DNA of 64,000 nucleotides. Origin: Scyliorhinus canicula (taxonomy: Eukaryota). The notes under the pieces were generated by a model. The model did no database searches. It was not told the DNA's origin and was given only the letters and a program-made list of their open reading frames with translations. The translations under genes were made by a program, and so were the position numbers. Every line of letters begins with the position of its first letter. The first letter of the stretch is position 1. Of the stretch, positions 10,301 to 57,544 are shown one piece after another. Location: positions 11,470,001-11,534,000 of the forward strand of contig NC_052168.1 in the NCBI RefSeq assembly GCF_902713615.1, written 5' to 3'.

Positions 10301-14076
<3,776 letters not shown>

Positions 14077-14151
14077 TCTGACTATGGACTGTTTCACAAA
14101 TTTACAATGAACACCAACAATACCAAAACCCTCTCAGCCCTAGTACTTGGA

Positions 14152-14302
14152 TTTATACCCCAGGTCCACAGCCTCAGTGTGTTAAGCAGGAAATGACATA
14201 GTCAATGATGGCCAAGCACTCTTGTTAATTAATCAAACAGTTGCCTTGTCCAATTAGATTCCAATCGGCCCAGGAGAGGATTTGGGAGTCAGGAACCAAT
14301 AA
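14152..14302 (-). promoter_or_regulatory. Proximal promoter of ferritin copy 1
   Basis: TATAAA (tttata 14152-14157), gcaggaaatgacata at 14186-14200, CCAAT boxes near 14250, 14262 and 14296; same layout in all five copies. Confidence 0.7.
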
Positions 14303-14619
14303 TAATGTTCAAGGAGAGGGTCCATTGATTGACAATCAATTATGGTGAAATTACTGTTGTACCGTTGACCCTCTTCACAAGTGCCAACTCTGAAAATGTC
14401 TCTACCTCAAACTGATTAGCACTGCTGCCTCACAGATATTTTCTGCTCCTGTTTAGATAGAATTACAGTGAATGTACAGCACAGAACTGTCCCTCAGCCC
14501 AGGTGTTATGTCACGTGATGTCCTCCCACTTTACAATTAATTCCATAATGGACTGGTGGCCTTTGAGGAACTGGAGAATTGAAGATTCCCACTCAATTAA
14601 AAGGGATGATCAAAGACTT

Positions 14620-22980: not shown

Positions 22981-27100
<4,120 letters not shown>

Positions 27101-27200
27101 TTTGTGAGTGTTGCCTTCTTTACCCTAATTATTTTACCACAATCTCAAATTTAGACCAAAACCCAACAATACCTAAAAGCTCACACCCTAAGCACATGCA

Positions 27201-27352
27201 TTTATACTCCAGGACCACAAAGTAATTTTATGGAGCAGGAAATGACATCACCAATGATAGCCAAGCACTCTTGTTGACCAATCAAAGAGTTGCCTTGTCC
27301 AATTGGATTCCAATCAGCACAGATAGGATTTGGGGCCCAGGAACCAATCAGA
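27201..27352 (-). promoter_or_regulatory. Proximal promoter of ferritin copy 2
   Basis: TATAAA 27201-27206, gcaggaaatgacatca 27235-27250, five CCAAT boxes between 27251 and 27350. Confidence 0.72.
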
Positions 27353-27927
27353 ATGTTAAAGAAGAGGTTCAATTGATTGACAACTCAACCATAATAGAAT
27401 TGGTGATTGACCTTTGACCTGCACTTTGGAGGCATTTCTCACTGAAAAATCATACTTTGACATTTGAGAGATGGTATTAAGACAAGCTTGGTGTAGATGC
27501 ACAGAGTTACATTCTTTGGTTCCTCTGAGTGACTCTTTATTTCTAAACTTTGAAGGACAGTATTGGAGGTTTTTGGAAAATTGAGACATCATTTGAAGAA
27601 TAATTTTTCCTGCTCGTTTGCAGCAACTGGAACAATGTGATATGGGACGTCCAATACGGAGATCTGAGGATAGGTTGACAAATGATGAATGTGTGGACCC
27701 ATTCTGTACCTCTTGTGATCACATTGAAGATTCCCTGGCTTGTAGGAATTCCAGTTTGAAACATTATGCTGTAATGTTCTGCAGAGCACCCGAGCTGTAT
27801 GGTAGGCCTCGGGCCTCCAGGTCTAATTTCCCCCAGAATCAGTTGCTGGAAGCATGTCACCGACCCACCATTGTAATATCTCTATATTCAGTGTTCTATC
27901 ATTCCAATGGACAACCCTCTACTGACA

Positions 27928-31205: not shown

Positions 31206-34883
<3,678 letters not shown>

Positions 34884-34976
34884 TTTGTGAGTGTTGCCTT
34901 CTTTACCCTAATTCTTTTACCACAACCTCAAATTTAGACCAATAATACCTAAAAGCTCACACACAAAGCACTTGCA

Positions 34977-35130
34977 TTTATACACCAGGACCACAAAGTA
35001 ATTTTATGGAGCAGGAAATGACATCACCAATGATAGCCAAGCACTCTTGTTGACCAATCAAAGAGTTGCCTTGTCCAATTGGATTCCAATCAGCACAGAT
35101 AGGATTTGGGGCCCAGGAACCAATCAGAAT
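34977..35130 (-). promoter_or_regulatory. Proximal promoter of ferritin copy 3
   Basis: TATAAA 34977-34982, gcaggaaatgacatca 35011-35026, CCAAT cluster; nearly identical to the copy 2 promoter. Confidence 0.72.
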
Positions 35131-35932
35131 GATAAAGAAGAGGTTCCATTGATTGACACGTCAACCATAATAGAATTGGTGATTGACCTTTGACCCTCAC
35201 TCTGGAAGTGTTTCTACCCAAAAACAACAATAAAATATCCTCTCAAATCTTATTTTTGACTTTGAGAGGTGGTATTAAGACAAGCTTGTTGCAGATGCAC
35301 AGTTACATTTTTTGGTTCCTCTGAGGGAGTCTTTATTTCTAACTTTTGAAAGAAAAGGTTGGAGCTTGTTGGAAAATAGAGATATAATTTGAAAAAGGCA
35401 TTTTCAGGCTGGTTTGCAGCAACTGAAACAATGTGATGTGGACCATCCAAGACGAGAATGTGATGATAGGTTGACAAACGATGAACTTGTGGACCCATTC
35501 TGTATTTCCTGTGGTCACGTTGAGGATTCCCTGGGTTGCAGGAAGCCAAGTTTGAAAAATAATGCTGTAACCTTCTGCAGAGAACCTCAGATGTATGGTA
35601 GGCCTCAGGCCTCCATATCTAATCCCCCCAGAATCAATTACTGGGAGCCTGCCCACCATTGTATTATCTCCATCAGTTTTTTTTGGACCAACGGACAACC
35701 ATCTACCGTCAAGAACATTTCCGATGAGATATTTTCCGCTCCTGTTGATGTAGAATATGTGCAGCACAGAGCCTGGCTACCCAGCCCAACTGCTTCGTGA
35801 GGCAATTATGGCCAGGATTTCATGGCTCTCCCTCAGCGAATCTCCCACCCCCACCGGTAGTCGTGGCGACCCATTCAAATGGCCATTCAGTTTGGCAAGA
35901 CTGGGTGAGAGTGGCCACAAAAGCCTGGCCAC

Positions 35933-42009: not shown

Positions 42010-46455
<4,446 letters not shown>

Positions 46456-46576
46456 TCTATGATCAGGGATTGATATTTTTTTTTCTTTCCCAAATGGCCC
46501 ACAAAACACAAACCTTTATCACAAATTCAGGCACAACCCTAACTGTGGCTAAAACCCCTCTGCCAAAGAACTTGGA

Positions 46577-46720
46577 TTTATACTCCAGGCACCAAAGTGA
46601 TTTTCTTGAGCAGGAAATGACATCATCAATGATGGCCAATCACTCTTGTTGACCAATCAATCAGCTGCCTTGTCCAATTGGATTCCAATCAGCACAGGAG
46701 ACGATGGGGGACCAATCAGA
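46577..46720 (-). promoter_or_regulatory. Proximal promoter of ferritin copy 4
   Basis: TATAAA 46577-46582, gcaggaaatgacatca 46610-46625, CCAAT cluster. Confidence 0.72.
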
Positions 46721-54315: not shown

Positions 54316-56866
<2,551 letters not shown>

Positions 56867-56979
56867 TCTGAGACTGTGGACTTTTTTGTTTGCAAATAGC
56901 CAACAAAACACAAACCTCTGTCACAAATTCAGGAACAACACTAACTATAGCAAAAAACCACACTGTCAAAGGCCTTGTA

Positions 56980-57132
56980 TTTATACTCCAGGCAACAAAG
57001 TGATTTCAGTGAGCAGGAAATTACATCATCAACAATGGTCAAACACACTTGTTGACCAATCAATCAGCTGCCTTGTCCAGTTGGATTCCAATCAGCACAG
57101 GAGATGATTTGGGACTCAGGAACCAATCAGAA
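56980..57132 (-). promoter_or_regulatory. Proximal promoter of ferritin copy 5
   Basis: TATAAA 56980-56985, gcaggaaattacatca 57013-57028, CCAAT cluster. Confidence 0.7.
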
Positions 57133-57544
57133 TGAGGCTCATGTGAATGGAAACTCAACCATGATCGAAATACTGATTGATCTTTGACCTCAGTCTCCAT
57201 CTAAAAATGCCAACACTCTTTGACCTTTGAGTGGAGGTATGGTGCAGACTCATAGAGTTACTTCAGTTTGTTACTTTGAGGGATTTCCCACCTAATTTAT
57301 GAAAGACATTGCTGGGACCAATTAGAGATGTTGCTGACAGAAAACATTTTCCTATTGGTGGACAAAACGAAGTGCTGTTGGGCATCCAACATAGGGATCT
57401 GATGGCAGATTGACAAAGAATGACATTATGGGGAAGGTGGGTGGTTAGAATAGTAAAATAGCTACATAGGGAAAGCTTCCCCAATGTATTCCTACAACCA
57501 GGACGTTTTTCCCATTATGGATTGAGATGTAGATCAGCTATGAT

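Follow-up and report, generated by a model that had tools for sequence, protein, structure and literature searches.

Few regulatory RNA elements of animal ferritin are as conserved as the 5′ iron-responsive element (IRE). Bullfrog M ferritin mRNA has a classical IRE, and L chains are marked by Tyr27, Gly65 and extra nucleation glutamates at positions 57 and 60. Vertebrate ferritins known to escape the IRE, FTMT for example, are retrogenes that lost it by retroposition. FTHL17, an intronless retrogene without a known IRE, presumably counts among them. FTMT is a vertebrate ferritin outside IRE/IRP regulation (PMC7760355). Mammalian FTHL17 carries Glu62Lys, has no ferroxidase activity, is expressed in germ cells, is multi-copy in mouse and lies on the X chromosome; in this protein, Glu62Lys alone is reported to be enough to remove ferroxidase activity (PMC7760355). 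In sharks, FTH1/FTL clusters have been reported, including an H-type array of the catshark (bioRxiv 10.1101/2024.09.09.611499). The largest shark cluster is reported to show ovary-specific expression, and the preprint makes no mention of the IRE (10.1101/2024.09.09.611499). No published account of the IRE status of shark ferritins was found in the literature searched.

The catshark genes analysed here differ from each of these systems. Like FTHL17 they have Lys at position 62, but the origin is independent, FTHL17 also has Glu61Asp, and the shark genes retain introns, an ancestral promoter and an in-place relic of the IRE. FTMT, unlike the shark genes, is intronless, has a mitochondrial presequence and keeps all ferroxidase residues; its IRE was lost by retroposition, whereas that of the shark genes decayed in place. 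Tetrapod FTL shares Lys62 with the shark genes and is a non-oxidising partner subunit, as theirs probably is, but keeps its IRE. Bullfrog M ferritin has the bridging glutamate (frog Glu58) where the shark genes have lysine. Within the catshark genome itself, the canonical genes (an M-like gene at chr 23:5,626,465 and FTH1 on contig 9) are of the same family and have the same exon 1 layout, and the M-like gene also shares a TATA-type promoter; unlike the genes studied here, they have an IRE (43 bits, about 40 nt past the TATA box) and retain Glu62. The H-type array (chr 23:5.58-5.97 Mb, 50+ copies) is similar in its four exons, its CCAAT/CRE-like/TATA promoter and its short leader without IRE, but it keeps Glu62 together with all ferroxidase ligands and has far more copies.

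Eight intact ferritin genes in tandem

The window is a 64-kb stretch of Scyliorhinus canicula DNA (chr 23:11,470,001-11,534,000). It contains five intact ferritin genes, head to tail on the minus strand, and copies 6-8 lie just past its end, giving an array of eight. A DNA search of the 4.2-Gb genome with exon 4 returned exactly eight copies, all in chr 23:11,480,304-11,550,358; it revealed no retrocopy elsewhere in the genome and no intronless Lys62 copy. Genes in the window, in window coordinates, are as follows.

10301..14076, minus strand: copy 1 gene, ATG at 14076; exons 13975-14076, 12211-12357, 11830-11955, 10301-10456 (stop included); 176 aa
22981..27100, minus strand: copy 2 gene, ATG at 27100; exons 26999-27100, 24462-24608, 24057-24182, 22981-23136; Lys62 and His65Leu
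31206..34883, minus strand: copy 3 gene, ATG at 34883; exons 34782-34883, 32902-33048, 32474-32599, 31206-31361
42010..46455, minus strand: copy 4 gene, ATG at 46455; exons 46354-46455, 44242-44388, 43863-43988, 42010-42165
54316..56866, minus strand: copy 5 gene, ATG at 56866; exons 56765-56866, 55443-55589, 55014-55139, 54316-54471

Each window gene has four exons, GT-AG introns and an intact protein of 176 residues, and reading frames and splice sites are intact in all eight array genes (8/8). The copy 1 protein is fully identical to RefSeq XP_038639503.1, 'ferritin, middle subunit-like'. The ferritin domain PF00210 was matched on the exons by Pfam, and the best match among solved structures was bullfrog M ferritin (PDB 1MFR, 4MJY), gapless over 176 residues with an E-value of about 1e-88. 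The full-length ferritin domain and the vertebrate-type layout of four exons with GT-AG introns place these genes among eukaryotic H/M-type ferritins. They are not of the FTHL17 type, an intronless X-linked retrogene, having three introns and a tandem arrangement.

The ferroxidase ligands considered were, in human H numbering, Glu27, Tyr34, Glu61, Glu62, His65, Glu107 and Gln141. All eight catshark copies have Lys in place of Glu62; the remaining ligands are unchanged except in copy 2. Compared with bullfrog M ferritin, the only ligand changed is the bridging glutamate, copy 2 having in addition Leu at His65; the full ligand set of catalytically active H/M ferritin is therefore not present. 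Set against the L chain, the shark proteins share Lys62, while Glu27, His57, Gln60 and His65 (except in copy 2) are H/M-like. The Lys62 subunit is probably a non-oxidising, L-like partner in ferritin shells. Copy 2 alone combines His65Leu with an Arg-to-Gln change in the FDRDD motif, its dN/dS is among the higher values, and it may be drifting further from the metal-binding site.

A protein search with exon 2 recovered the same ferritin type in Mustelus, Scyliorhinus torazame, Heterodontus, Chiloscyllium, Hemiscyllium, Stegostoma, Rhincodon and Heptranchias. Lysine occupies the position of human H-chain Glu62 in every sequence examined (S. canicula, S. torazame, Mustelus, Heterodontus, Chiloscyllium, Stegostoma and Heptranchias). 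Among these Lys62-type genes, dN/dS is 0.06-0.33 within and between species, which indicates that they are maintained by purifying selection. In the zebra shark Stegostoma tigrinum (CM060546.1), one identical Lys62 protein is encoded at 13.21, 13.73 and 13.86 Mb, three places spread over 650 kb, so the zebra shark has a much larger Lys62 array than the catshark with its eight copies.

Absence of an IRE from the leaders

A TATAAA box precedes the ATG of each window gene on the minus strand. An earlier note on this DNA had placed these boxes 76-122 nt from the ATG and had claimed that none of the five intervals holds an IRE. The intervals match exactly, the distances given there being the intervals plus one. 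The leaders and boxes are listed below with the interval lengths.

14077..14151, minus strand: copy 1 leader interval, 75 nt, without IRE by Rfam, motif scan and fold; predicted transcribed part about 14077-14127
14152..14157, minus strand: copy 1 TATAAA box (14152-14157), a column block conserved in alignments
27101..27206, minus strand: copy 2 leader interval, 100 nt, and TATAAA box (27201-27206), without IRE by Rfam, motif scan and fold
34884..34982, minus strand: copy 3 leader interval, 93 nt, and TATAAA box (34977-34982), without IRE by Rfam, motif scan and fold
46456..46582, minus strand: copy 4 leader interval, 121 nt, and TATAAA box (46577-46582), without IRE by Rfam, motif scan and fold
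56867..56985, minus strand: copy 5 leader interval, 113 nt, and TATAAA box (56980-56985), without IRE by Rfam, motif scan and fold
C10:41036678-41036714, and a second on contig 1 (local 1803-1838): processed FTH1 pseudogenes with IRE, used as internal controls

Three methods agree with the claimed absence. The Rfam search that the earlier note had put forward as a check, with the IRE_I model (RF00037, cut-off 34 bits), gave no match in the whole window at the gathering score, nor at E<=10 on either strand. The copy 1 leader searched alone (111 nt) with the laxest filters contained no IRE, and none was found at E<=10 in copies 6-8. A scan of both strands for an unpaired C, an upper stem of 5 bp and a loop CAGUG, CAGAG, UAGUA, CAGGG, CAAUG or CAGCG detected no IRE in any of the five leaders; the nearest weak matches, at 35204 and 36037, concern copy 3 only, lie upstream of the promoter and have hardly any lower stem. 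Finally, the predicted leaders of copies 1-5 fold no better than their dinucleotide shuffles (z from -0.58 to +0.39), the canonical catshark ferritin leader used as a control folding as a textbook IRE (z -3.3).

Absence of the motif from about 100 nt is what chance alone would give; it gains meaning only from the ready recognition of this genome's two canonical, intron-containing genes, whose IRE_I scores are 42.9 bits (M-like gene, chr 23:5,626,465) and 42.7 bits (FTH1, contig 9). Even processed FTH1 pseudogenes that have in-frame stops reach 42.7 and 37.5 bits. The IRE is thus truly missing from the array genes. Outside the catshark, none was found in Lys62-type genes of Stegostoma (2 loci scanned) or Heptranchias (3 examined, 2 scanned).

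Other weak Rfam matches in the window, a U7-like one at 23400-23449 and several lncRNA fragments (E 2-8), were taken as chance.

A relic of the ancestral IRE

In one Lys62 copy of the sevengill shark (Heptranchias), a stretch of 36 nt that lies 32 nt downstream of the TATA box can be aligned to the canonical IRE of the catshark, with 11 identical bases across the loop and the 3′ stem. The alignment score was reached by none of 20,000 shuffles (0/20,000). The stretch occupies the expected cap-proximal place, at the same distance from the TATA box as the canonical IRE. It is disabled by three changes: 3 nt are inserted between the bulge C and the upper stem, the middle stem pair is broken, and the loop C is changed to U. 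Even a search confined to 121 nt gave no Rfam match to it, and the fold that it adopts is a different one, a triloop stem. The third sevengill copy showed no significant alignment to the canonical IRE (p=0.09). In this third copy (local 2640-2760), GC-rich sequence has replaced the distal promoter upstream of about -240, the proximal CCAAT/CRE/TATA part being kept.

Of this relic, catshark leaders retain just the 5′ half, with its offset unchanged.

14110..14126, minus strand: copy 1 relic 5′ half, 17 nt, 15/17 identical to the sevengill relic, p=0.0035
27164-27176, minus strand: copy 2 relic 5′ half, p about 0.06
34932-34952, minus strand: copy 3 relic 5′ half, p about 0.06
56930-56944, minus strand: copy 5 relic 5′ half, p=0.034

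Aligned directly to the canonical IRE, the catshark leaders gave no significant score (p>0.06), and their IRE homology is drawn from one sevengill copy and short shared blocks. The sevengill relic and the catshark 5′ halves together indicate that an IRE once stood in exon 1 and decayed there; its loss is secondary, the ancestral element having decayed in place.

Sub-families of the H-type array (chr 23:5.69-5.80 Mb) retain different fragments of the old IRE, one keeping the 5′ half with the insertion and others a CAGTTTTTGAAC-like loop with the 3′ half.

Probable order of IRE loss and ferroxidase change

In a maximum-likelihood tree, which included no FTL, the Lys62 clade is monophyletic (support 100/99) and is sister to the H-type array clade with moderate support (93/85). 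The IRE-bearing M-like gene is in turn the sister of the two clades combined. At E<=10, no IRE was found in thirteen H-type array copies, for which the internal control scored 37.5 bits. Their promoter is plainly homologous to that of the Lys62 array. Moreover, an exact derived 12-mer is common to three H-type copies and the sevengill Lys62 relic (p 0.0003-0.0013); it includes the insertion after the bulge C, and the offsets are nearby (29 versus 38 nt after TATAAA).

These observations bear on the suggestion, made in the earlier note, that loss of the IRE fits loss of the ferroxidase site. Such a link now looks weak, since the sister array keeps Glu62 and yet lacks an IRE, with the same derived leader sequence. 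The IRE loss would thus not be tied to the ferroxidase loss; most likely it was independent of the ferroxidase change and preceded it. We lean towards the IRE having been inactivated once, in an ancestor shared by both arrays and ahead of Glu62Lys, as the rather more probable course of events. The best-surviving alternative is that the two arrays lost the IRE independently, the loss in the Lys62 lineage coming after that of the ferroxidase site. The sevengill Lys62 copy keeps much of the IRE and the catshark copies do not, so that decay went on separately in each lineage. However, the 12-mer with its C-bulge-displacing insertion is common to the sevengill relic and three H-type copies, and the two clades are sisters with the same promoter, so that we regard separate losses as unlikely, if still worth weighing.

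Conserved promoter and divergent leader

The promoter, taken as 170 nt up to and including the TATA box, contains several inverted CCAAT boxes, a CRE/ATF-like TGATGTCA and a block GTATAAAT. The CRE/ATF-like TGATGTCA is located about 40 nt before the TATA box in most copies, and is degenerate in copies 1, 5 and 8; a scan with TGAYRTCA gave no match to the site of copy 1, ACTATGTCA. Copies 2, 3, 5 and 7 have a direct repeat of DR1 type (AGGTCA-A-AGGTCA or a near variant) about 310-325 nt upstream of the ATG, and the zebra shark genes have one at -275 from the ATG.

14158..14400, minus strand: copy 1 promoter, with inverted CCAAT boxes, degenerate CRE-like ACTATGTCA and a distal degenerate DR1-like site
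27408-27420, 35184-35196 and 57178-57190, minus strand: DR1-type sites of copies 2, 3 and 5

This DR1-type site is of the kind bound by HNF4/RXR/COUP-TF-type receptors and may point to liver or gonad expression. No metal, antioxidant, hypoxia, NF-kB or STAT motif is conserved in the promoters. The transcriptional control proposed in the earlier note, by tissue, stress or immune signals, stands in part: it fits the conserved promoter directly upstream, and no finding singles out stress or immune signals.

Promoter identity is 0.75 when the catshark copies are compared with one another and 0.61 when they are compared with the zebra shark and sevengill shark genes, against 0.44 and 0.35, respectively, for the leader between TATA and ATG. 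The conservation spans three shark orders, Carcharhiniformes, Orectolobiformes and Hexanchiformes, across which a classical core promoter is kept directly on the coding exon. That the promoter is conserved while the leader diverges argues against a hidden upstream exon, and so against the possibility that an IRE is present on an unannotated non-coding leader exon, or downstream of an alternative upstream start, and is spliced onto exon 1. A CAG or TAG lies 3-12 nt before the ATG in copies 1 and 4-7 and could in principle serve as a splice acceptor, but no AG is found close to the ATG of copies 2, 3 and 8. Furthermore, searches of both strands over about 94 kb, which took in the entire array plus 9 kb upstream of its first gene, recovered no IRE, and neither did those of the 3 kb preceding the zebra shark and sevengill shark orthologues. 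The relic lies between TATA and ATG, just as the canonical genes have IRE and ATG in exon 1. We consider a spliced leader of this kind improbable.

A non-canonical hairpin or other element in the leaders that still binds IRP1/2 or senses iron is less probable again. Some loop variants are tolerated by IRPs, and the loop of the sevengill relic is UAGUGU; against this, the leaders differ widely from copy to copy and from species to species, their alignments reveal no shared hairpin, they fold no better than shuffles, and the sevengill relic forms a different, triloop stem and has no Rfam match.

RNA-like sequencing runs contained 13-18% of the copy 1 gene's words, about the share expected from the size of an mRNA, and 15-61% of 13 words from exon 1 and the leader, which is compatible with a leader that is transcribed or not. 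Although the protein search returned no Lys62-type protein from transcript assemblies and copy 2 has extra changes including His65Leu, a silent or decaying array whose IRE eroded neutrally in dead genes is hardly credible in view of the intact frames and splice sites of all eight genes, the low dN/dS, the promoter conserved in three orders, the mRNA-sized word share of copy 1 and the identical protein modelled by RefSeq.

Proposed regulation and significance

Having weighed these alternatives, we consider it likely that the array comprises eight functional tandem genes of the Lys62 clade whose IRE decayed in place, and whose output is set by the promoter instead of by IRP control. Transcription would start about 30 nt after the conserved TATAAA and produce a short unstructured leader of about 50-100 nt, which IRP1/2 could not clamp so as to block 43S loading. 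The amount of subunit would then depend on the promoter, through its NF-Y-type CCAAT boxes, the CRE/ATF-like site and, in some copies, the DR1-type site, and not on labile iron. The Lys62 subunit, predicted to be unable to oxidise iron alone, would serve as an L-like partner in shells built jointly with H/M-type subunits. The disabling of the IRE would have happened once, in the common ancestor of the Lys62 clade and the H-type array, before Glu62Lys. On these grounds we infer that the array is uncoupled from IRP control.

As to function, oocyte provisioning is a reasonable guess for the Lys62 genes, by analogy with the ovary-specific expression of the largest shark cluster; liver expression would fit the DR1-type site of several copies and of the zebra shark. 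More speculatively, one ancient cluster of mutations, including the 3-nt insertion, may have disabled the IRE of one gene before living sharks radiated and so freed a ferritin lineage that later gave rise to two arrays, one of them ferroxidase-dead and L-like; we offer this scenario only tentatively. If it is true, sharks run a promoter-driven ferritin beside an iron-sensed one, perhaps stocking oocytes or liver regardless of cellular iron, and the freed lineage amounts to 60+ genes in the catshark.

The shark case concerns a family of genes that contain introns, conserve their promoter and are under selection, with an IRE that decayed in place and left a datable relic. Taken with the sister H-type array, the majority of shark ferritin genes would lie outside IRP control, which bears on how the published, reportedly ovary-expressed clusters are read. 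The array is also a natural experiment on ferritin function uncoupled from iron sensing and on the origin of an L-like subunit. Shark ferritin arrays as such were already published; new here are the significant in-place IRE relic for the Lys62 clade, the conservation of its promoter against divergence of its leader, and the derived leader motif by which both arrays are linked and the loss of the IRE is set apart from that of ferroxidase.

Intron 1 of copy 2 also contains an open frame on the plus strand (25320-25634) that resembles the C-terminal part of a LINE reverse transcriptase, by a weak tblastn match.
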